From positions 126,083,345-126,139,407 of the forward strand of contig NC_068982.1 in assembly GCF_001194135.2 (NCBI RefSeq): DNA of 56,063 nucleotides. Direction: 5' to 3'. This DNA comes from Octopus bimaculoides (Eukaryota). Within the stretch, counting starts at the first letter, position 1, and each line of letters begins with the position of its first letter. Below, piece by piece: positions 1-55,479 of the stretch. The notes beneath the pieces are model-generated. The model worked only from the letters and a program-made list of their open reading frames with translations, ran no database searches and was not told the DNA's origin. A program made the translations under genes and the position numbers.

Positions 1-535
1 CTCCTACATCACTATTCTCTCTCCTACACTGTCTTGTGACACGAAATACCTCAAGTCTTTGGTCCTCACGGCGCAGAACATTGGCAAATCTTTTCTTATC
101 TGCCTCCCCTCTGGCTAAATAAACCTGTCACCTAGCTTCCCTTCTGGCAGATTGGTACAATTCCCTGCTACCACCGTTCTTCCAGTCCTTCCAAGCCTGT
201 TTCTTTTGTCTAATAGTCCTGTCTACCTCCTTGTTCCACCACCACGTTATTTTGGGTCGAGAAGGGACTTTGCACCAACCACAGATCTCATTGGTGGCCC
301 TCAGCAGGTTGTCCCGTAGAAACGTCCAGTTGTCCTCTACATTGTGTGAAGCTACATCCCCCTCTATTTCGTCAAAGGCTTCGAGTAATAGGTCCCTAAA
401 TCTCTGTCCATTTGCAGGATCTTTGAGCTTCCATACCCTTCTCCTCCAAGCTGGTCGTCTTCTGGGCAGCCACTTAGCTCTGATCCTAAAGTCACTATCT
501 ACTAGTCTATGTTGTGGGGTACATTCTTCGCCTGG
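1..535 (-). mobile_element. RTE-type LINE fragment (region between endonuclease and RT)
   Basis: ORF 128..670 gives VWKLKDP...NWTFLRDNLLRATNEICGWCKVPSRPKITWWWNKEVDRTIRQKKQAWKDWK, the WWN-containing linker typical of RTE LINEs. The frame continues to the window edge. The ORF's N-terminus is microsatellite read-through. Confidence 0.85.
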
Positions 536-983
536 GATGTGTGTGTGTGTGTGTGCATGCATGCATGCATGTGTGTATACTTGTATATCTACTAATTTAT
601 ATGTATATCTGTTAAACACAATCCTGATGTCCATATAGAAAATTTGATGTTTACTATAATTATCTTTCATTCAATTCATTGTTTTGCCTTTTCTAAAACT
701 ATAATTAATGATGAAAATTGTATTTAAATTCAGTAATCTATTTGATCCAAATATTTTTAACTGAAATAATTGTACTCTATTAATATATTAATATATAAGC
801 ACATTACATATAATATCGCACTATAATTCAGATTTTAAAATATATTTTTCCTAATTTAATATTTAAGTGTAATAAACTTTATATGTTGTTAATATAGATA
901 CATGCATACTTATATATATATGAATATGTATATTTACATATATCTATACACAAATATAAATACATACATGCATACATATATTT

Positions 984-4436: not shown

Positions 4437-4860
4437 CATCATCATCTAAAGTCTGTTTTCTATGCTGGCATGGATTGAGTTGTTTGACTGAGGTCTGGAG
4501 AGCCAGTGGCTGCACCAGGCTCTAATCTGATCTGGCAATGTTTCTACAGCTGGATGCCCTTCCTAACACCAACCACTCCGAGAGTGTAGTGGGTGCTTTT
4601 TACATGCCACCTGCACAGGAGCCACTCAGGTAGGCCTGGCATTGATCATGTTTGGATGGTGCTTTTTACATGCCACTGGCATGGGAGCCGATCAGACGGA
4701 CCTGGCATCGACCACGTTCGGATGGTGCTTTTTACATGCCACCGACATGGGAGCCAGTCAGCGGGCACTGACCACAGCTACGATATTGGTTTTACTTGAC
4801 TCAACAGGTTTTCTCAAACATATATCACCCGATGCATCAGGGGTATTCTTAACATGTGTG
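4437..4860 (-). mobile_element. RTE LINE 3' UTR fragment (family A), older copy
   Basis: (CAT)n tail, ctacagctggatgcccttcctaacaccaacc, and three gtgctttttacatgccac subrepeats. Confidence 0.8.
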
Positions 4861-5403: not shown

Positions 5404-5790
5404 GTCTGTTGTATACTTCTCCTATAAATAAAATTAGCATGAAGAATCTCTATCCAATTTAATCTCTTTCACTTTTAGTTCAGATATTGTTTCTTAAAGT
5501 GAAACCTCAACATATTATTTCAATAATTTAAAACTTCTCAATTTGTATAGCAGTAAAATTATCTCAAACCAAACACAATCTCTGATTAACAGAGAAAGCC
5601 AAACCATGACTGATAACTTTGATAATGATCATTTTTTTTTTTTGTAATATTTTCAATATATCACATTTTGGAATATCATAAGAACAAACAGCTGAGCCAA
5701 ATATTTCACATTGTTATACACAACCTTCAGTCCTTGAATAAGTATTATATTTTTAGTTTCTGACTTAGTAACCTCTGACACAGCATATAT

Positions 5791-6191
5791 GCATACATGC
5801 ATACATACATACATACAAACAAAGATAGAACCTTGTATCTTGGTTGGAAACAGGCTTCCCCCTCAGTAGAAGATAATTAAAAAAAATAGAAGCAATACAT
5901 ACATACATACATACATACATACATACATACAAACAAAGATAGAACCTTGTATCTTGGTTGGAAACTGGCCCCCTCCTCAGTGGAAGATTTATGATAATTA
6001 AAAAATAGACGAGACATACATACATACATACATACATACATACATGCATTCCAAATGTGAATTTGTCTGTGTTAAGTACATCCCAAAGATGGAGCCTTGT
6101 ATCTTTGTTGGAAACTGGCTCCCTCCTCAGTGGAAGAGTTATAATAATTAAAAAATAGAAGAGACATACATACATACATACATACATACAT
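5791..6191 (+). repeat. Tandem array of three RLE-retrotransposon 3' tails, each followed by (CATA)n
   Basis: Units at about 5817-5895, 5931-6014 and 6048-6164 share ccttgtatct..gttggaaac.ggc..cctcagt.gaaga...ataattaaaaaatagaag. Unit 3 matches the reverse complement of 30868-30945. Confidence 0.8.
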
Positions 6192-6199
6192 ATGCGTGT

Positions 6200-6245
<46 letters not shown>

Positions 6246-9295: not shown

Positions 9296-9625
9296 CATCA
9301 TCATCATCATCATTTAACATCCGCTTTTCATGCTAGCATGGGTTGGATGATTTGACTGAGGACTGGTGAACCAGATGGCTACACCAGGCTCCAATCTGAT
9401 TTGGCAGAGTTTCTACAACTGGATGCCCTTCCTAACACCAACCACTCCAAGAGTGTAGTGGGTGCTTTTACGTGCTACCGGCACAAGGGCCAGTCAGGTG
9501 GTACTGGCAATGGCCACGCTCAAAATGGTGTTTTTTACGTGCTACCTGCACAGGAGCCAGTCCAGCAGCACTGGCAACGATTTCGCTTGAATGTTTTCTA
9601 ACGTGCCACCGGTACAAGTGCCACT
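9296..9625 (-). mobile_element. RTE LINE 3' UTR fragment (family A)
   Basis: (CAT)n tail plus full family A core and subrepeats. Confidence 0.85.
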
Positions 9626-9675
9626 ATTTTAAAATCTCATATAATTTCTAATTAATGATAATTATTATCAATAAT

Positions 9676-9852
9676 CTTTTCTACTATAGGCACAAGGCCT
9701 GAAATTTTGAGGAAGGAGCAAAGTCGATTAAATCAACCTTAGAACTTATTTTATCAAACCTGAAAGGATGAAAGACAAAGTCAACTGCAATGTAGTTTGA
9801 ACTCAGAACATAAAGACAGACGAAATGCTAACGATTCTACCAGCTCACCACA
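9676..9852 (-). mobile_element. tRNA-derived SINE family C (Nin-like central domain)
   Basis: gaaaggatgaaagacaaagtcaac...tttgaactcagaac...gctaacgattctaccagctcacc is the reverse complement of the family C head and core. Confidence 0.75.
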
Positions 9853-10611
9853 TTATTTATCACTAATAATAATATTAACTTTATACTTTATTACTGGAAC
9901 AGTGTCAGCGAAATTCATTTTTCAGCTTCGAAATCATCTCATTATAACTTTACTTTCTATATTCTTTTCCTGTATATATCCTAATCATTTTCAGTTGCTT
10001 CTGTTAGTGACTCAGTCTTTAGTCTCTTTAGTAGAAAATTCTGAAATAATCACATGAACTTTCTTCTCAAACCAAGCTAGCTAACTTCTGCTGCCACCCA
10101 AATGACCCACTAATTCTAAGCTATAAAGGAGAGACACTACTTATTATAATTTTATGGTTAAATCTACAGCCTTCTTCAGCAGAATCTTCTTCATGTTAGC
10201 TGAATTTTAATACAGCTTACGATTGTCTTTCAATATATCATAACAAAGGTATCCTCCAAAGCCACAAAAGAAAGAATCATCTGATAAACTTAAAAGAAAG
10301 ATAACTGAGTTAAATTATTGAATTCCTTCTTGAGTGGCTGGTAGTGTTACATATATACATATACATACAAACACACACATATATATATAATTACACACAC
10401 GCACACAAATACACACACACACAAATACACACACACACATGCACACATATATTTTTCAATCCTCCAAGTATTTGTTTCTGTTTATTTTTATCTTTCGATA
10501 ACATCAACGTATAAAGTATACTATCTCAATAACAATCTCTTTTACCTGCAAGCATTGGCAGTAGTTGTATTATTATTGATATATCAAGACTAAGTTATCT
10601 GCCTCTAACAT

Positions 10612-23724: not shown

Positions 23725-23958
23725 GGCAAGCTGGCAGAAATGTTAGCATGCTGGGTGAAATGCTTAGCAGCATTTGGTCTGCCGCTGCATTCTGAGTTCA
23801 AATTCTGCCGAGGTCGACTTAGCTTTTCATCCTTCCGGGGTTGATTAAATAAGTACCAGTTACGCACTGGGATCGATGTAATCGACTTAATCCCTTTGAC
23901 TGTCCTTGTTTGTCCCCTCTATCTTTAGCCCCTTGTGGGCAATAAAGAAATAAGAAAT
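23725..23958 (+). mobile_element. SINE family C, tail type A
   Basis: gcaagctggcagaaatgttagc...gttcaaattc..gaggtcgacttagc..ttcatcc...gtaccag...gggcaataaagaaataagaa. Confidence 0.85.
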
Positions 23959-24754
23959 TATATAGAACACAGTTGGCAACTTCGCAAGTGCTGGTGCTAT
24001 GATAAAATGAACTGAGTACATGTTGAGGTATAAGTGGAGACATCATAGGTTCAAGAAAACACATAGTCTCGCCTTGTCAAAAACATGACAACCTCTTTAG
24101 TGCTGGTGCCAAAAGAAAAAAAAGTGTATCCAGTTCATTCTGTAAAGTGATTGGAAAATGAACAGAGATATTTTAGGATAAGGACACTTTTGACTTTTGT
24201 CTTGTCAAGGACATAACAGCCTCTGTAGTGATGGTACCACTATAAAATGCACCCAGTACACTCTGTAATGTGGTTGGTGTTGTGAAGGGAATCTGTTGAT
24301 GGAAATCATGGCAAAAGGATGATAGATGCATGATGCATGGTTGAGGAACTATGCCTAGGAGAACAGTAACTCCAGAGTAAAACTTACTTGATCCTGATGT
24401 AAAATGATGACAATATGCATGTATATTTATATTTGTGTATACTACCATAAAGAGCATATCAAGTTATCTCATCCTCTTCTTCTGACTGAGAATTATTAAT
24501 GCAGTATCTAACAGTTGAATGCCCTTACTGTTGCTAACCATTACCTGTTTTTTATAAGGTACCTTTTATTCCGCAAGTCTTCACAAAAAAAACATTGAGC
24601 TACAAGATGTTTTTTTATGAAAGTAAACATGACATTACCATTGCAAAGACGCAGGGAAAGTAAACATTTATTACACACACACATACACACACTCACACAC
24701 ACTCACAAACATGCACACATACACATGCATATATCATGAGTTTTTAGATTCTGT

Positions 24755-30188: not shown

Positions 30189-30420
30189 GACGGTGAGCTG
30201 GCAGAAACGTTAGCACGCTGGGCGAAATGCTTAGCGGTATTTCCTCTGCCGTTATGTTCTGAGTTCAAATTCCGCCAAGGTCGACTTTGCCTTTCATCCT
30301 TTCAGGGTCGATAAATTAAGTACCAGTTACGCACTGGGGTCGATGTAATCGACTTAATCCCTTTGTCTGTCCTTGTTTGTCCCCTCTATGTTTAGCCCCT
30401 TGTGGGCAATAGAGAAATAA
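30189..30420 (+). mobile_element. SINE family C, tail type A, young, with a possible 16-bp TSD
   Basis: Near-consensus copy flanked by ataaatttgtaaattt (30165-30180) and ataaatttataaattt (30420-30435). Confidence 0.9.
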
Positions 30421-30489
30421 TAAATTTATAAATTTTCCTTGCCTATGGTACACTGTAAGTATTTGTATGTAGGTGCAAATGTATGTATG

Positions 30490-30770
30490 TTCTTCTCTTC
30501 CTCTTTTTAATTTAGAGTAAAGTTTCGACCAGCCACCTACTTGGTTGCAAAGTTGTGAAGTAAAGTATCCTGTTTAGTTCATCATTCTTTAAATCTTAAT
30601 AGTCCCAGATATCATGATCATTTGTAGTGTATGAATTAAGGAATCGCGTTCTCTCCCCAAGAATCTTAGTTTAACCAACTTTGCTCCAAATGGGTTGGTA
30701 TGTACCCTGTTGTTCCAATAATAATAGATATGAAGCTGAAAGTGTATCTTGGATACTAGATTTGCATACT
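30490..30770 (-). mobile_element. RLE-clade non-LTR retrotransposon, 3' fragment
   Basis: Degraded ..QDTLSASYLLLLEQQG / YTFSFISIIIGTTGYIPTHLEQ resembles the end of the RLE domain; ends in catacatac. Confidence 0.6.
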
Positions 30771-30867
30771 ATGTATGTATGTATGTATGTATGTCAGTGA
30801 GTGAGTGAGTGAGTGAGTGAGTCAGTCATTATTCAGTTTTATTTCAAGATTTCTTGCCAATGTATGT

Positions 30868-31880
30868 ATGTCTCTTCTATTTTTTAAAATTATTATAAAT
30901 CTTCCACTGAGGAATGGAGTTAACACAAACAAATTCACATTTTGAACTTGAAAGAAGTCTTGCATATTTTTACTGTTACACTCACAGATTCTCCTTTAAG
31001 CAGTTACTAACAAAACCTAATGCTCCAATTATTATTGGTATGAATATGAATTCATTGTCTGGATATAGAATCTGGAGGTTTTGAAGCAGTTGTCCATAGA
31101 GACCCGCTTTTCAAAGAGATATTTATATCTGCAGGACAGCTAACTTCTGTGATGGTACATACCTTTGCTCATCCATCCCAAACAACAATATCCAGCCTTT
31201 TATGTTTACATTTGACAGACGTTTTGATGGGAATATTCCACCAGTATTCTTTGAGTTGGTGTTTATGAATGTATTCCATAGCAGAAAGATTTTCTCATTT
31301 TATTTCAGGACAGTCTTTTTTGCGGATGGCATTGTAAATTGTTTCAGCGACAACATCGTGCCACATAGGGAAGTAGTACCGTGATGACATTTTAGGACAG
31401 CTGCTAATCACATACGTGATGTCTTCCACAGAAACATGACATAGCCTACACATATGGCTGCATCTTGAGATTACAAGAGCATCACTGTCCCTCTTGTTCA
31501 CCTGATATTCTGAGGCAGTTTCCTGTTCCTGGATTGCAAACACATAACTCTCAAAGTTTGATGTGATGTAGTGGTCTTGTGTCCAAAAGAGGTTACACTT
31601 TGTGTCAATTCTTCTTCAAGCTTCCGGGCAACATACCCATGCATGATTTTTTTGTTTTTGTATGCTCCATCCAGGTCTTCTCTGAGGCAAGAGAGCCCAG
31701 CTGTTTTGTGGCTGTACAGGAAATCATCAGGAAGCGAGTGCTTCCTGAGGAGGTCACTGCCAACTCGTACAATGTTGCTCACTTCACTTTTCAGCACTGC
31801 ATTTATATATTTATTTTCACTGCTGTTGTTTAGTAGGTGCTGCCTGAGTGATACCATACAGCATTTGAAGGCCGTCTGCA
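30868..31880 (-). mobile_element. RLE-clade (R4/NeSL-like) non-LTR retrotransposon, 5'-truncated
   Basis: FAIQEQE...CRLCHVSVEDITYVISSCPKMSSRYYFPMWHDVVAETIYN (CCHC knuckle), then WWNIPIKTSVKCKHKRLDIVVWD..CTITEVSCP (RLE). Frameshifted; flanked by (CATA)n at both ends. Confidence 0.85.
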
Positions 31881-31933
31881 CTGATGTATGTATGTTGTAT
31901 GTATGTATGTATGCATGCATGCATGTATGTATG

Positions 31934-32030
31934 TCATTGTTCAGATTTATTTAAGATTTTTTTGCCAATAGAGAAAGAGTCAGGTTCCTTCATTGGAATT
32001 TCAACATGAACAACAGGGTAGTTTTCTTTG
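31934..32030 (-). mobile_element. Short 3' tail of a second (CATA)n-associated element
   Basis: Minus strand ctctttctctattggcaaaaaatcttaaataaatctgaacaatgac(ATAC)n; a second copy lies at 30826-30862. Confidence 0.55.
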
Positions 32031-32061
32031 TTTGTATGTATGTATGTATGTATGTATGTAT

Positions 32062-32447
32062 ATGGCCAGATTTGTATGCTTTAGGTTGTAGCAGCAATTG
32101 TACTTCCTAGCACTCACGTGTCAGTAAGGGGAGGGTGGCTACTAGTAAGTAATAGTTTACCTCTCAAGGCACGATGGCACCGACCATGGTAAAAACCCTG
32201 CACCTGCTAGAGCCTATGTCAAAGTGTGCACTTTAGATTCGGCTGAGGAAATGCTTGAAACAAAACACTGGATTGACAGGCCACATTTGTTTAGGTGCAC
32301 TGCTATGGACAAGTGATCCATGGGACCACCCACATTAAAAGGGCGAAAGATTGTTGTTGAGGCACAGTGGTGGGGGATAGCCTAATTTGGCTACCTTCTC
32401 GCACTCTAGTGGCACTCTTTCCCTTCAGGGAAAGGCTATGTATGTAT
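32062..32447. repeat. Unclassified GC-richer element between two (TATG)n tracts
   Basis: About 385 bp of complex, CpG-containing sequence bounded on both sides by (TATG)n; no coding motif recognised. Confidence 0.35.
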
Positions 32448-33502: not shown

Positions 33503-34310
33503 AGGTGGTGAGCTAGCAGAAATGTTAACATACCAGGGGAAATGCTTAGCAGTATTTGATCTGCTATTATGTTCTGAGTTCAAACTCCGCCGAGGTCGAC
33601 TTAGCCTTTCATCCTTTCGGGGTCGATTAAATAAGTACCAGTTACGCACTGGGGGTCGATGTAATTGACTTAATCCCTTTGTCTGTCCTTGTTTGTCCCC
33701 TCTATGTTTAGCCCCTTGTGGGCAATAAAGAAATAAGAAACGTTAACACGCTAGGCGAAATGCTTAGTGGTATTTCATCAGTCTTTACCTTCTGAGTTCA
33801 AATTCTGTCGAGGTCAACTTTGCCTTTGATCATTTTGGGGTCGATAATTTAAGTACCAGTTGTGTACTGAGGTAGATCTAATCAACTGGCTCCCTCCCCC
33901 AAAATTTCGGGCCTTTTGCCTAGAGTAGATAAGATTATAATAAGCCAACTTAAGGTAGCGAGCTGGTAGAATCATTAGCATGCCAGACAAAATGCTTGGT
34001 GGCTTTTTTCCCAACATCACATTCTGAGTTCAAATGTTGCTGGGGCCAACTTTGTTTTAATTCCTTTCAGAATGGAGTTAATGTAATCAACTTACCCTTC
34101 CCTGAACTTGCTGGCCTTGTGCCAAAATTTGAAACCATTATTTTAAGTCGAAATGTTAACCAGTTGATCCAATTTACAAATCGATTGTTTGATTAATCAT
34201 TCGTTTAATCAAACAGTCATTTGATTGATCAGAATCCAAATAATTTTAAGGTTGTAAGCTGGCAGAATCTTTAGAACACAGGGCAAAAATCATTTGGAGC
34301 ATTTTGTCTG
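33503..34310 (+). mobile_element. Head-to-tail array of family C SINEs (three copies plus a head fragment)
   Basis: Copies at about 33503-33738 (tail A), 33739-33940 (tail B, head starts at agaaacgttaac), 33953-34140 (tail C) and a head at 34250-34310. Confidence 0.85.
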
Positions 34311-34416
34311 TCTAATAAATTATTTCTTCTGGCATTTTTGCACCAGTCATTGTTATTGCATCCCTAGGAATTCTGATTTGTGTACCATGGTGAAAAGTTT
34401 CTTCATTGTGATTAAA

Positions 34417-34668
34417 ATGGCACCAAAGGGAAAAGAATTGTCTAAAGATTTGAAGAAAATTATTTTTAATTTGCACAAGAATGGTTTAGGATATGAGTTA
34501 ATTAGCAAACGAATACATGTTAGCATAAACACAGTTACCAAAGTAATTCAGAAATACAAAGCTACTGGACGGCTAAGCAATAAACTTCATCCAGGTTGTC
34601 CTTCTATTTTAACTGGGCATGATATTCACCACATCCAACATTGCATGATGGACGACAGGCATCATACC
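34417..34668 (+). mobile_element. Tc1-family transposase, N-terminal HTH fragment
   Basis: MAPKGKELSKDLKKIIFNLHKNGLGYELISKRIHVSINTVTKVIQKYKATGRLSNKLHPGCPSIL matches the Tc1 paired-like DNA-binding domain; truncated by a family A tail. Confidence 0.85.
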
Positions 34669-34676
34669 CAATATAT

Positions 34677-34770
34677 CATCATCATCATCGTTTAACGTCT
34701 GCTTTCCATGCTAGCATGAATCGTCCAACCCATGCTGGCATGGAAAGCGGACGTTAAACGATGATAATGA
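34677..34770. repeat. Inverted fusion of two family A tails (short hairpin)
   Basis: catcatcgtttaacgtctgctttccatgctagcatg / aatcgtccaacc / catgctggcatggaaagcggacgttaaacgatgat. Confidence 0.85.
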
Positions 34771-36534: not shown

Positions 36535-36670
36535 CAAGGTTATTGTACAAGGCCAGCAATTTTTGGGGAGGGGTTAAGTTGATTAAATCAACCCCAGTGC
36601 CCGACTGGTACTTATCTTATTGACCCCGAAAGGATGAGAGGCAATGTCAACCAAAGCAGCATTTAAACTC
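36535..36670 (-). mobile_element. SINE family C fragment
   Basis: caaccccagtgcccgactggtacttatcttattgaccccgaaaggatgagaggcaatgtcaacc. Confidence 0.75.
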
Positions 36671-36878
36671 AGATTAATGTACGATATTAATATTCTATTA
36701 GTAATGTCAATAATTGTCTGCTTTGCAAGGTTAGGTTTGGTTATATTCATGTACAGGAAATCATTTGCAATGCAACATGTGGAATATTATTTACATATAT
36801 TGTTTATAAATGTATACTGCTTATGAATGCAAGTTAATACAGCCTTATTATTTCCATCAAAATAATTATGCTATGTGG

Positions 36879-38349: not shown

Positions 38350-38544
38350 AGTGATCCTTTCTATAATAAGCACAAGGCTTGACATTTGGGAAAGGAGGAT
38401 AGTTGATTACATTGACCCGAGTACCCAACTGGTGCTTAATTTATTGACTCTGAAAGGATGAAAGGTAAAGTCAACCTCAGCAGAATTTGAACTCAGAATG
38501 TAGCAATGGGCAAAATGCCGTTGAGCATTTCATCTAGTATGCAT

Positions 38545-44864: not shown

Positions 44865-45065
44865 TTTGGCACACGGCCAGTAATTTCAGGGTAGAGGTTA
44901 AGTTGATTACATCAACCCCAGTGCTCAAATGGTGCTCATTTTATCAACCCTGAAAGGATGAAAGGTAACGTCAACCCTGGCAGCATTTGAACTCAGAACA
45001 TAAACGCAGACAAAATGCTGCTAAGCATTTTGTCTGGCATGCTAACGACTCTGCTAGCTCACCTC
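44865..45065 (-). mobile_element. SINE family C
   Basis: tcaaccctgaaaggatgaaaggtaacgtcaacc...gctaacgactctgctagctcacc. Confidence 0.8.
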
Positions 45066-45084
45066 CTTCATAATAATAATAATG

Positions 45085-45139
<55 letters not shown>

Positions 45140-45141
<2 letters not shown>

Positions 45142-45669
45142 GGGTCACAGAAACGGTCACAGAAAACGAGAAAGCAACCATACTCTGGGATATGCCAATA
45201 CACACAGATAGAGAAATTAAGGCCAATAGACCAGATATAGTTGTCAAAGATCATGAAGGGAAAAAATGCTTTCTAATTGATGTATCAATACCAGCAGATG
45301 ACAATGTTTCCCTAAAAGAAATGGAGAAACTTTCAAAATTCAAAGACCTGGAAATAGAGGTAACTTGAATGTGGAATCTAAAAACAGANNNNNNNNNNNN
45401 NNNNNNNNNNNNNNNNNNNNNNNNNNNNNNNNNNNNNNNNNNNNNNNNNNNNNNNNNNNNNNNNNNNNNNNNNNNNNNNNNNNNNNNNNNNNNNNNTACA
45501 AATATATATAACATACAGAAAATTGCACTACTAGGCACTGCACACATCCTACGCAAAACACTTTCAATACAGTAACCATAAGAGCATCACAGCAAACCAC
45601 AGCACATACCCAAGGCACACAGAGCTGCACTCGGAAGTGAAGTGAAAGCACGTTATAAAAATAAAACTA

Positions 45670-45672
<3 letters not shown>
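45140..45672 (+). mobile_element. Dong/R4-like RLE retrotransposon, 5'-truncated, inside (AAT)n
   Basis: ILWDMPIHTDREIKANRPDIVVKDHEGKKCFLIDVSIP (PD..D.. RLE motif) ... IQKIALLGTAHILRKTLSIQ*, then a 3' UTR; (AAT)n at 45070-45139 and 45673-45741. Confidence 0.9.
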
Positions 45673-45741
<69 letters not shown>

Positions 45742-45958
45742 CCTTTCTACTATGGACATAAGGCCTAAAATTTGGAGGAGGGGGTTTAGTCAATTACATT
45801 GACCCCCAGTACTCAGCTGGTACACATCTTATCAACCCTCCCTGAAAGGATGAAAGACAAAGTCAACCCTAGCAGTATTTGAACTCAGAACATAAAGATG
45901 GATGAAATGCTGCTCAGCATTTTGCCTGGCATGCTAATAATTCAGCCAGCTTGCTGCC
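45742..45958 (-). mobile_element. SINE family C, tail type B; its (ATT)n tail is the adjacent (AAT)n tract
   Basis: (aat)n-cctttctactatggacataaggcc...gaaaggatgaaagacaaagtcaacc...gctaataattcagccagc. Confidence 0.8.
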
Positions 45959-50819: not shown

Positions 50820-51310
50820 TGTGCATCCTAGTAATAGAATGAGAGAGTGGTCTATCGAGTGTCAAGGAGATATTGGTCAATGTTTCCAGTTACTTTGCTC
50901 CAAGCACGTTCGTACACATCCTGTTGTTTCAAAACTGAAATGCATCTTGAGTACTGGATCTGCAAAGTCCTCAAATTTTTCTATTTACTGTATTTTTCAG
51001 ACCACATAGTGTCCAGAAGACAGCTGATTTCCTCAGGAGAGCATTTTTTTCTTCCTTATAGTCCCACACAGCAATATCTGGCCAGTTGCATTTTAATTTG
51101 GTGGCTGTGTTAATTCTTGAGTTCCACCAATTTTCATTTTGAATACATCAGTTTCAATACAGGTCAACTTTGTTGTTTTTTTTAAGATTTTTCCTTATTC
51201 TATTCCAGATTGTTCTAGCAACTGCATAATACCTCATGAGATTACAATATCAACAAGACAGTTTCTAATACTACTTTCGTAAAGAACTAGAAGGTCTGTT
51301 ATACTTTGGT
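50820..51310 (-). mobile_element. Degraded RLE-clade retrotransposon 3' fragment (same group as 30868-31880)
   Basis: AVARTIWN...WWNSRINTATKLKCNWPDIAVWDYKEEK..EISC; frameshifts and stops. Confidence 0.7.
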
Positions 51311-51504: not shown

Positions 51505-51760
51505 TCTACCAAATCCACTCACAAGGCTTTGGTCAGCCTGTGGCCATAGAAGACACTTGCCCAAGGTACCATGCAGTGAGATTGAACCTGGAACCATATG
51601 ATTGGGAAGCAAGCTTCTTACCACAGGGCTACTCTTGCACCTATGTGATGAAAGGGAAAGTGAACCCTAGTGGCATTTGAACTCAGAACATAAAATCTGA
51701 AGAAATGCTGCTAAGCATTTTCCCCTGCTTGGTAACGATTCTTCCTGCTCAACAGCTTAC
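51505..51760 (-). mobile_element. Adjacent SINE B (51505-51645) and SINE C head (51650-51760)
   Basis: ctaccaaatccactcacaagg...gacacttgcccaagg; then ggcatttgaactcagaac...gctaagcatttt. Confidence 0.7.
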
Positions 51761-52689: not shown

Positions 52690-52850
52690 TATAATAATAA
52701 TAATGATGATGATGATGATGACGATGATGACGACGATGACGATGATGACGACGACGACGATGATAATATGATAATAATAATAATAAGAAGAAGAAGAAGA
52801 AAAACAAGAAGAAGAACAACAACAAGAAGAAGAACAACAACAACAACAGA
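52690..52850. repeat. Compound triplet microsatellite (AAT/GAT/GAC/AAG/AAC)
   Basis: Seen directly; abuts the 5' end of an R4-like fragment. Confidence 0.9.
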
Positions 52851-53362
52851 GAGGCAAGATGTGGTATGAGCACAAACTTCAGAGAGTGGCAGAGTTAGAG
52901 ACTAGCAAAATCTGGGATTTCCCAATCCAAACAGATCAGGTGTTAGAGTATAAGAGACCGGACCTAGTGGTGGTCGACAAGATGCACCACATGTGCTGTA
53001 TAGTTGATGTTGCAGGCCTCTTTGACCCATGAATAGTCAAGAAGGAAGGTGAAAAAATAGATAAACACAACCCTCTTAAGTATGAAATAGCCCTGCTGTG
53101 GAAAATGAAGAAGGTGAAGATAGTGTCAATTATTGTTGAGTCCTTGAGAACAGTATCAGAATGCATCAAGAGGAATATAAAGGAAATTGGAATAGAGTCC
53201 CCAGTGGAACTGCTACGAAAGGTTTGCCTTCTTAGCTTGGCCAGAATAACCAGAAAAATATTAGATAGAAAAGAACAGATACCATAGTACTGTGGGCAGC
53301 AGGTAGCAAGCCCACTATGTGTGTAAGACTCCAGGAGTTCCAACAAAACCTGTGATAGAAAG
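52850..53362 (+). mobile_element. R4/Dong-like RLE retrotransposon, 3' fragment
   Basis: KMWYEH...IWDFPIQTDQVLEYKRPDLVVVDKMHHMCCIVDVAG...EIALLWKMKKVKIVSIIVESLRTV...ELLRKVCLLSLARITRKILD. Confidence 0.85.
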
Positions 53363-53393
53363 AAATAATAACAATAGTAATAACAATGATAAT

Positions 53394-54810
53394 ATTGGGA
53401 TGGAGTTTGGTCTTGATAAATGTACTGAGGCCACTTTCCAAAAAGAGAAATTTAAGACCCCACATGTGTTGGTGTTAAATGCTGACATAGTTATAAAAGA
53501 ACTTGAACAGGAACAAACTTGCAAATACCTCAGAATAAATGAAGGCTCTAGCATTCAGCATGCAAGCATGAAAGAGAAGATTAAGAAGGAATGCTAGAGG
53601 AGAGTTCAAGCAGTCCTGAAATCTGAGCTAAATGCATATAACAAGGTGTTAGCTATAAATTCCAGTTGTTATTTATAGTTTCAATGTGTTGAACTGGAAT
53701 ATCAATAAAATAAAGAAAATTGACAGGAAAATTTGTAAGTTGCTGGCTTGCAATAAGATGTACCATTCAAAGGTGGATGCAGATTGTCTTTACCTTCCCA
53801 GAGCTCAAGGAGGTCGGAGTTTGATCCAGTTTTAAATTTCTTACAAAACCACCACAATTGAACTGGCCAAATATCTTGAAACATCTATCGATTGTATGCT
53901 AAAGCTTGTTGAAAATCATAAGAGGTATAAGAAGCTTCATTCTGTCATGAAGGAAAGCAAAAAATTTGCTATTGAGTTCATACATGATACCCAGGTTGAA
54001 CAGCATGATGGCAGTTTGGCAACTGTTGTTGCAAAGAAGGTGATATTAATGGCAAGGAAAAAAGCATATGAACAATTAGCTGATAGGTGAGAGCAGAAAC
54101 CTCTGCATGGCAAATATGTGGCCCGTAGCAAACAAACTGATGTAGACCAGAAGTACCCCCATCAGTGGCTATGAAGCTCAGGGCTAAAGGCAGAGAGTGA
54201 AAACTTCATCTTAGCTATTCAAAATCAAAGCTTATTGATGTTGAACTACTCAGACAATGTTATAAAAAAATGGAGTAGATCCAAATTACTGATTCTGCAA
54301 TGATGAGATTGAATCAGTGGACCACCTAATCTCTGGGTGTAAAGAATCAGCACCAGTTGAATATAAATCAAGGCATGACAGAGTTGACCAATATCTGCAC
54401 TGGTTAATATGTCAGCATTATAAAATCACAACTGTTAACAAATGGTATAAGCACCATCCTGAGTCTGTTACTGATTGAGGATATGTAATGATTCCTTGGG
54501 TCTTTCCAGTACATACAGACAGAACCATCAAAGCTAATAAACTGGATGCTGTTGTGAAAGACCAAAACGATAATGCCTGTTTATTGATTGACATGAGCAT
54601 CCCTTGTGATCCTAATATCTAGCAAAAGATTTTGACAAGCTCAGAAAATTTTTTAAAATGTGGCATCTCAAAGCAGTTACAGTACCAGTGATTATAGAAA
54701 CACTTAGAATGATCAAAAATGGAACTGAAAATTACTGGAGAATGATCCCTGGTTTATCATCCATGTAATAAGTGCATAAGATTGTTTTAACTGGTATGTC
54801 ACACATATTG
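53394..54810 (+). mobile_element. R4/Dong-like retrotransposon, 5'-truncated (end of RT, thumb, CCHC, RLE)
   Basis: IGMEFGLDKC...KYLRI...LYLPRAQGGRSL...KPLHGKY...GLKAESENFILAIQNQSL...FC..ESVDHLISGC..EYKSRHD..LHWLIC..HTDRTIKANKLDAVVKD..CLLIDMSIP; many stops. Confidence 0.9.
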
Positions 54811-55479
54811 AGAAGAGTGTTGTCGCTGTAAATGTTGTTGCTGTGAATGTTGTCGCTGTGAAATATTTTCTCTCTTTTCTTCTTTCATTCCTTTTTCTTT
54901 TTTTCATTTTTCTCTTTTTGTTTTTCTATTTTTCTTTCTTGTTTCTTCTTTTCTTGTTTCTCTTCTTTTTTCTCTTTTCTTTCTTTTTTTCTTCCTTTTT
55001 TCTTTTTTCTATTACATAACTTGACTTTGCAAATGAAAAATCTAGTGTGCTTACTTTAATGGCCTATCAATGTAAACAGCGAGTTTCTTTGCCCTAGGTG
55101 TCGGGAAGACATCAGCAAGAAATGAAAGCAAAACTGAAGGACGAAGAAAAAAAACAATAACGACAATAATAATGATAATAATAATTGACCCCAGTAATGG
55201 AGTGATACATGGTTGATTGATTACTCCTCCCCAAGTAAACGAAAAGCAAAGTTGTTGTTGACTGAATTTGAACACAGTGAGCAGAGACCTGGAATGAATA
55301 TTGCAAGACACTCTCTTCAATTCTGAGAAATGAACAAAGAAAATGTGTGTGTGTGTGAAAGAGAAAATATTGAATGCTAGTTTGGCATTATCTCTCAAGT
55401 ACAAGTGCCATCTAGCCATTGTGCAAACTGTCAGTGACCAGCATTCTTCAATTTAAACCACAATCTGAGACAAGGCTAG

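Follow-up and report, generated by a model that had tools for sequence, protein, structure and literature searches.

Long interspersed nuclear elements (LINEs) that insert specifically into microsatellites are well established (PMC3812793, PMC4640811). Dong, a member of the R4 clade known from Bombyx, Anopheles and the snail Biomphalaria, carries a restriction-like endonuclease (RLE) and targets (TAA)n (PMC3812793, PMC4640811). Some families of HERO, a group of RLE elements that is mostly non-specific, also have microsatellite targets, and the RLE element Togen is (TG)n-specific in fish (PMC4640811). A second set of such LINEs encodes an apurinic/apyrimidinic-like endonuclease (APE) and includes Waldo, an (ACAY)n-specific element of the R1 clade (PMC3812793), Mino, an R1-clade element with an AC target, and Kibi and Koshi, whose targets are TC and TTC, respectively (PMC3812793, PMC4640811). 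In octopus genomes "Dong-R4" LINEs are described as abundant and recently active, with no mention of a target preference (PMC13282606, PMC8967140). In this study we analysed a stretch of 56,063 nucleotides from Octopus bimaculoides (contig NC_068982.1, positions 126,083,345 to 126,139,407; hereafter the window, numbered from its first letter), in which fragments of RLE-type LINEs alternate with runs of the tetranucleotide CATA at two loci. We consider it likely, with a probability of about 0.8, that these arrays are stacks of 5'-truncated copies of (CATA)n-homing RLE LINEs, inserted in one orientation. This kind of homing is already known; what is new is the CATA target and a conserved hairpin in the 3' untranslated region (UTR) near the tail.

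Inserts stacked in CATA repeats at two loci

The array at 5784-6192 on the plus strand, read directly from the sequence, consists of three units, the first 82 bp, the second 85 bp and the third about 118 bp long, with (CATA)4-8 between them (Table 1), which confirms the layout that an earlier note on this DNA had proposed for 5791-6191. The pairwise identity is 86% between units 1 and 2, 91% between units 2 and 3 and 82% between units 1 and 3. Unit 1 is the most decayed of the three, having a 7-bp deletion and an altered end; the earlier note had described all units as ending identically, which does not hold for unit 1, since it ends ..cctcagtAgaag..aatagaagCAATA, 7 bp short. Unit 3, whose 5' boundary could be placed only to within about 4 nt, reaches 37 nt further 5' than the other two, into the open reading frame (ORF). 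Its start ..ttccaaatgtgaatttgtctgtgttaag aligns to ..ttcaaaatgTGAatttgtttgtgttaac, the end of the frame ..KICKTSFKFKM* in a copy of about 1 kb on the minus strand (31883-30871), and thus the correspondence between the start of unit 3 and the ORF end, also suggested earlier, was borne out. Over its first 36 nt, unit 3 shares 86% identity with the ORF end of this copy. The final 43 nt of units 2 and 3 match minus-strand positions 30913-30871 at 91-93% identity, with 93% and E 8e-13 for unit 3. No element tail was found upstream of the 5'-most CATA array (5784-5815), and this array may therefore be what is left of the microsatellite that was first targeted.

The 1-kb copy belongs to a family, here called A, whose end is the simple repeat CATACATA…. 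The earlier note placed it at 30868-31880 and matched the three units to it. The match to the ORF end and the 3' UTR stood, but the unique part of the copy ends at 30871 rather than at 30868, and exactly the 45-bp hairpin segment of the units (6078-6122, plus strand) is missing from it at 30911-30913 (minus strand), the gap being either an internal deletion or the mark of a hairpin-less subfamily. The copy is, moreover, one of four inserts in a second stack (32063-30479, minus strand), which draws on two families, A and B, and has four different truncation points. The copy itself is dead: its frame is shifted at least twice and interrupted by at least three in-frame stops, and RPD has become RLD. 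Its tail is apparently split by the insert that follows, a 35-nt fragment of family B. We also considered a target-site duplication of 12-13 bp round this array (CATACAAATCTGG / TATGCAAATCTAG) and rejected it, because the 3' match proved to be part of the coding sequence (..MQILYP..) of copy A', the fourth insert.

In the window, all seven of the insert 5' ends adjoined CATA, always on the strand of the insert's own tail. For comparison, 0.69% of the strand-specific window positions have a CATA repeat of at least 10 nt no more than 4 nt upstream, which gives naive p values of 1.5e-11 for five events and 7e-16 for seven, although the events are not fully independent because the CATA arrays are themselves element tails. 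The 5' flanks are therefore not random, and together with the RLE identity of the element and the flanks of its relatives (see below) they support the inference of a (CATA)n-homing RLE LINE made in the earlier note. All pure (CATA) arrays of at least four units in the window attach to these tails, and nhmmer and blastn searches across the window revealed no further copy of the tails. The only extra match of these searches, at 51025-51264 on the minus strand, was a coding-region RLE remnant 33-35% identical to the relatives. Because unit 3 is longer at its 5' end, it does not derive from units 1 and 2, and this length, along with the mixed families and truncation points of the second locus, means that at least two independent insertions took place at 5784-6192 and four at 32063-30479.

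The encoded protein and the relatives of the element

After frame correction the 1-kb family A copy aligned to metagenome proteins with 44-73% identity. The invariant columns were, in window numbering, C46, C49, H58, C63, H76-D77, P131-D132, E147, K159 and K161, corresponding to conserved C-x2-C-x8-H-x4-C, RHD and (R/K)PD motifs, an acidic residue in ..E(V/I)SCP.D.N.. and two lysines. The Pfam search of the frame-corrected window fragment gave no match, and the domain calls were therefore taken from relatives. The full-length ones have a single ORF of 1085-1220 amino acids (aa) with a central RVT_1 domain followed by a CCHC/zf-RVT region. RVT_1 was detected with E values of 1e-22 to 1e-29 in P0020, P0025, P0042 and the ORFs (1150-1220 aa) of contigs L006, L007, L009, L010 and L011; this evidence for a reverse transcriptase (RT) comes from relatives with 44-59% identity over the C-terminal region, the window copy being truncated downstream of the RT. 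No Exo_endo_phos (APE) domain was found in five full-length ORFs at E ≤ 0.1 or in seven database proteins at E ≤ 0.01, and the full-length relatives had neither an N-terminal C-x2-C..H-x3-5-H motif nor a zf-C2H2 match. A Myb-like N-terminal motif (R.NRDY...F.W(T/S).EL..DL..CY......GY..R.K..WD..HPE....S.K.L.DQA.R), undetected by Pfam, was conserved in the ORFs of the same five contigs and in P0042, P0044 and P0060; judged by its sequence, it is the only recognisable candidate for a DNA-binding domain upstream of the RT.

In a comparison against PDB sequences, a full-length relative matched R2 proteins best (E 1e-24), and a profile of the C-terminal region gave a weak R2 match (E 0.05). The AlphaFold (AF2) model of P0001, the closest intact C-terminal relative, had a predicted local distance difference test score (pLDDT) of 73. 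The fold search with this model placed the R2 proteins of zebra finch (R2Tg), turtle and silkworm (R2Bm) first (E 9e-9 to 2e-4), followed by PD-(D/E)XK nucleases of the cap-snatching and the restriction or nicking kinds. The conserved CCHC, RHD, PD, E and K positions and the fold matches to R2 and PD-(D/E)XK nucleases thus indicate that the family A copy is a fragment of an RLE-type LINE and that the label "RLE element", given to it earlier, is correct.

The repeats that flank the relatives were examined in metagenome contigs. Four contigs have both flanks visible and a matching tetranucleotide on the two sides: L009 (intact, 3.9 kb) lies between (CATA)26 at the 5' side and (ACAT)28 at the 3' side, L011 (intact, 4.4 kb) between (CATA)19 and (ATAC/ACAT)17, L010 (intact, 4.7 kb) between (CTTA)24 and (CTTA)12, and the 5'-truncated L002 between (TTAC)20 and (ACTT)5. 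In L006 and L007, which have intact ORFs, only the 5' side can be compared, (ACTT)n and (TACT)n, respectively, the 3' side lying beyond the contig. L001, with an intact C-terminal ORF of 484 aa, ends in (CTGA)n and has no repeat in the contig at its 5' side. These contigs are collapsed repeat assemblies, and one that runs through 19-26 units of the 5' repeat therefore implies that most copies have that flank. Nearly all of the tail motifs fit CNNA when read from the position that follows the final unique base. Neighbour-joining analysis of the C-terminal 200 aa grouped the CATA-tailed elements (family A of the window, L004, L003, L009, L011 and P0018) in a clade with 79% bootstrap support, and CATA use thus looks, from these sequences, as though it were inherited within a lineage that several hosts carry. 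The 5' repeat of L002 is at the same time the tail of a tRNA-derived short interspersed nuclear element (SINE; 9540-9892), which ends in the same repeat as the LINE inserted there and is likely a non-autonomous partner of that LINE.

The 3' UTR hairpin, the proposed mechanism and its alternatives

A hairpin of the form CC-UU-[6 bp]-[5-nt loop]-[6 bp]-Y-GG, with a loop that is often UUGUU or UGGUU, lies 34-50 nt upstream of the tail in units 1-3, in A' and in L001, L002, L003, L009, L010 and L011, the hairpins of L001 and A' being variants. The stems differ (GUAUCU, GUUCUA, GUCACU, GCUGUA, GCUAUA, GAUUUC), compensatory changes were observed in five of the eight hairpin pairs, and 95% of the cells were paired, versus 28-50% when the partner column was slid. 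The hairpin was present in the minimum-free-energy folds of unit 3, A' and all six of these contigs. Upstream of it, units 1 and 2 have only about 15 nt left, and they hold little besides the hairpin and the tail. By analogy with R2, whose protein recognises its 3' UTR, the hairpin is probably the RNA feature recognised by the element protein. A second match to the hairpin pattern in L002 (15516, minus strand), with no adjoining tail, was taken as chance. Rfam and tRNA (ARAGORN) scans of the window gave no matches.

In the mechanism that we consider most likely, the element protein would bind its own RNA via this small hairpin, the RLE would nick the (TATG)n strand of a CATA microsatellite, and the freed 3' end would pair with the (CAUA)n tail and prime reverse transcription, i.e., target-primed reverse transcription (TPRT). 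Reverse transcription would abort early in most cases, leaving inserts of 35-1000 bp. As each insertion would add a fresh (CATA)n tail, the target would be regenerated and lengthened, and later insertions hitting earlier tails would give rise to the arrays. A stronger version, in which the target is set largely by the RNA tail through pairing of (CNNA)n with the nicked microsatellite rather than by protein-DNA recognition, and in which a module of about 85 nt is sufficient, is put forward as a tentative and rather doubtful extension. If it were true, related families would re-aim among CATA, CTTA, CTGA, CAGA and CCTA via the last four templated bases, the module of about 85 nt (hairpin, spacer of about 40 nt and tail) would suffice for mobilisation, and the elements would represent a natural RNA-programmable compact homing system.

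Several observations weigh against the stacking of homing insertions as we describe it. The host genome is sampled by one 56-kb window, and neither an empty site nor a target-site duplication nor a polymorphism was at hand to prove that the events were separate. Units 1 and 2 have a common 5' junction, CATA-CAAACAAAGATAG (CATA-CAAACAAAGATAGAACC), and differ from unit 3 by three shared derived bases (gatAgaAcc, loop tGgtt), which also fits local duplication. The 35-nt family B fragment (30794-30860 with its tail) sits within CATA but has a (CTCA)6 tail, an arrangement that simple pairing of tail and target does not explain and that speaks against such pairing as the full account. The old, decayed RLE remnant at 51025-51264 has no recognisable microsatellite on either side, and the ends of L005 carry different repeats (CTTG/ACTT/TTGC at the 5' side, a mixture of CTAC/CTGC/CCTA at the 3' side). 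The relatives are known from short-read metagenome contigs, in which microsatellite ends could be tandem arrays or assembly breaks. As for the hairpin, the folding energies of the whole UTRs were no better than those of shuffled sequences (z -0.1 to -1.4), and the set was partly collected by a pairing-based scan, which makes the covariation count partly circular. A mismatch of tail and target resembling that of the family B fragment was seen in L003, which ends CATACATACA(GACA)n and whose 5' side lies beyond the contig.

Local tandem duplication, in which a single insertion would have been amplified by unequal exchange or replication slippage between CATA arrays, accounts for the junction and derived bases common to units 1 and 2 and for the 114-bp period (2.3 copies, 88% matches) that Tandem Repeats Finder reported across them. 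For these two units alone, where the earlier note had raised it, it has close to an even chance. As an explanation of the arrays as a whole it is quite improbable: it fails for unit 3, which runs 37 nt further into the ORF and so is no copy of units 1 and 2, unit 2 is nearer to unit 3 than to unit 1, and the second locus is made of four different pieces from two families with four truncation points. Moreover, the same CAAACAAAGA start is found in three inserts from two families and two loci (5816 and 5930 on the plus strand, 32034 on the minus strand), 15-17 nt upstream of the hairpin region, and L011 keeps CCAAAG at the homologous place upstream of its hairpin. This repeated use of one start suggests a recurrent 5' end and not one duplication; microhomology may make this place a truncation hotspot, or a processed mini-RNA may have its 5' end here. 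Nor would duplication explain why full-length relatives have matching repeats at their two ends.

Template jumping by the R2 reverse transcriptase in vitro is established biochemistry, and by moving from one RNA to another's 3' tail the enzyme could have joined several truncated cDNAs within a single TPRT event, to be integrated together. Such one-shot concatenation would yield repeats of truncated body and tail in one orientation and could even mix families A and B. We nevertheless regard it as unlikely, given that the units differ by 9-18% and that unit 1 is more decayed, which suggests different ages (weakly, the sequences being short); the long 5' arrays of the full-length relatives (19-26 units) fit a pre-existing array better, and the L002 copy sits in the tail of a different element, the tRNA-derived SINE. 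The idea that (CATA)n is merely an element-encoded tail and that insertion is non-specific, the inserts being neighbours because the region is repeat-rich or its chromatin permissive, agrees with the attachment of every window CATA array of at least four units to a tail, with the lack of a long "virgin" array in the window and with the remnant at 51025-51264. It is, however, very hard to reconcile with seven of seven 5' ends adjoining CATA on the tail's strand, with tails that occur nowhere else in the window, with a unit 1 whose 5' array has no upstream tail sequence, and with consensus-like contigs that run through 19-26 repeat units 5' of intact elements, and we consider it highly improbable.

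Neighbouring repeats, comparison with known systems and significance

The window contains further RLE LINEs of a (TAA)-like type. At 45070-45741 (plus strand) a 5'-truncated copy of a different family (..ILWDMPIHTDREIKANRPDIVVKDHEGKKCFLIDVSIPADDNV..), interrupted by an N gap at 45389-45496, shows a Dong-like (TAA)n-in-(TAA)n arrangement: its LINE part (45140-45672) is preceded by (ATA)23, with which a SINE-like unit ends, and followed by an (AAT)23 tail of its own. In the database it is most closely related to P0076 and P0067 (56-61% identity). Two more 5'-truncated RLE LINE copies are placed head-to-tail at 52785-55187 (plus strand); a T/C-rich repeat (54873-55010) breaks up the 3' region, and the AAT-like run at 55150-55187 may be the tail of the second copy. 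The (TAA)-type RLE LINEs serve as an internal control showing that the homing habit is general for such elements in this genome. A SINE-like family of about 250 bp with at least ten copies (..gattacatcgaccccagt..ctgaaaggatgaaagg.aaagtcgacc..gaatttgaactcagaac..) is probably mobilised by them; trinucleotide repeats, namely (CAT)n, (AGT)n(AAT)36 or (ATA)23, come after several of its copies, and no tRNA-like head was found for it by Rfam and ARAGORN in the window. Other features are an unrelated LINE ORF fragment (128-670, minus strand), the N-terminal helix-turn-helix part of a Tc1/mariner-like transposase (34294-34695, plus strand) and a 66-bp tandem repeat of 2.6 copies (4592-4761). The window has 33% G+C and 2635 N in several assembly gaps, and it contains no evident host exon of at least 110 aa.

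Table 1. Positions of the inserts, CATA arrays, hairpins and further repeat copies in the window.
Feature	Position	Strand	Remarks
5'-most (CATA)n array	5784-5815	+	degenerate CATA/CATG, then (CATA)4
Unit 1	5816-5897	+	82-bp 3' UTR module: CAAACAAAGA junction, hairpin, spacer of ~43 nt
Unit 1 hairpin	5831-5854	+	CC-UU-GUAUCU-UGGUU-GGAAAC-A-GG
(CATA)8	5898-5929	+	unit 1 tail and 5' flank of unit 2
Unit 2	5930-6014	+	85-bp 3' UTR module; 5' junction as in unit 1
Unit 2 hairpin	5945-5968	+	
(CATA)7 + CATG	6015-6046	+	unit 2 tail and 5' flank of unit 3
Unit 3	~6047-6164	+	~118 bp; last 2-3 codons, stop codon, entire 3' UTR
Unit 3 hairpin	6095-6118	+	outer GGAGCC/GGCUCC stem at 6091-6122
(CATA)7	6165-6192	+	unit 3 tail
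(TG)n	6196-6244	+	follows the unit 3 tail
5'-most (CATA)7 array, second locus	32035-32063	-	
Family B tail fragment	31934-32034	-	~100 bp; starts CAAACAAAGA, ends ..ttggcaaaaaaatcttaaataaatctgaacaatga
(CATA)/(CATG) array	31884-31933	-	separates the ~100-bp family B fragment from the 1-kb copy of family A
Family A copy	30871-31883	-	~1.0 kb, 5'-truncated downstream of the RT; linker, CCHC knuckle, RLE; ends FKFKM*
CATACATACA	30861-30870	-	left part of the family A tail
Family B tail fragment	30860-30826	-	35 nt; own tail CTGA(CTCA)6CTGA at 30825-30794
(CATA)6	30770-30793	-	between the family B 35-nt fragment and copy A'
Copy A'	30491-30769	-	279 bp, 5'-truncated, family-A-like; last 60-70 codons and 3' UTR; ends ..aaaaagaggaagagaagaa
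Copy A' hairpin	30552-30529	-	
CATACATACAT	30479-30490	-	copy A' tail, end of the array
RLE LINE copy 1 of 52785-55187	52856 to ~53363	+	after (AAG/AAC)n
RLE LINE copy 2 of 52785-55187	53394-54819	+	RT to C-terminus; begins right after the AAT-like tail of copy 1 (53364-53394)
SINE-like copies	30200-30450, 23733-23964, 33516-33895	-	
SINE-like copies	38401-38531, 44898-45054		
SINE-like copies, further	45781-45937, 9744-9826, 36569-36673, 51647-51745		

One of the closest parallels is Dong, likewise a single-ORF RLE LINE in one orientation whose tail equals its target microsatellite and which has a representative in a mollusc; families A and B differ from it in using the tetranucleotide CATA instead of (TAA)n, and the conserved hairpin was not found in the (TAA)-type RLE copy of the window. 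HERO and Togen are also single-ORF RLE LINEs, some of which home to microsatellites. Compared by description, they differ in their repeat motifs; HERO is mostly non-specific, whereas the relatives studied here that have a visible 5' end all adjoin a tetranucleotide repeat. Waldo resembles the CATA families in its target class, as CATA repeats, read in another register, give ACAT, which fits ACAY. However, Waldo has an N-terminal APE, while the relatives here lack an APE and have a C-terminal RLE; the likeness is one of target convergence and not of a common family. The best sequence and fold match, R2, shares with these elements a Myb-like motif at the N-terminus, the CCHC knuckle and PD-(D/E)XK nuclease located C-terminal to the RT and, presumably, protein recognition of a structure in the 3' UTR RNA. 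In contrast to R2, which has N-terminal C2H2 fingers and a target in 28S ribosomal DNA, the relatives have no fingers and a microsatellite target, their tail is a tetranucleotide repeat, and their 3' recognition module appears to be very small (about 85 nt). No CATA- or ACAT-specific RLE LINE was described in the literature searched, Repbase being outside this search.

R2-type enzymes are under development as tools for targeted insertion of DNA (PMC13586686, PMC13580325). It would be useful to compare them with a relative whose 3' recognition module is very small and whose repeat target differs from one close family to the next, and such a relative would also permit a test of how far targeting is guided by RNA. 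The units of 82-85 bp can be viewed as a natural minimal-substrate experiment, in which only the covarying hairpin, the spacer and the tail were kept. For genome annotation, the stacking of inserts explains the conserved flanks of CATA arrays in this genome, which are a source of trouble for microsatellite markers and assemblies. The CATA-specific RLE LINE lineage appears to be spread over several host species, with sister families using other tetranucleotides. By homing to microsatellites, such LINEs can multiply while sparing genes, and they create and lengthen the simple repeats that they inhabit.

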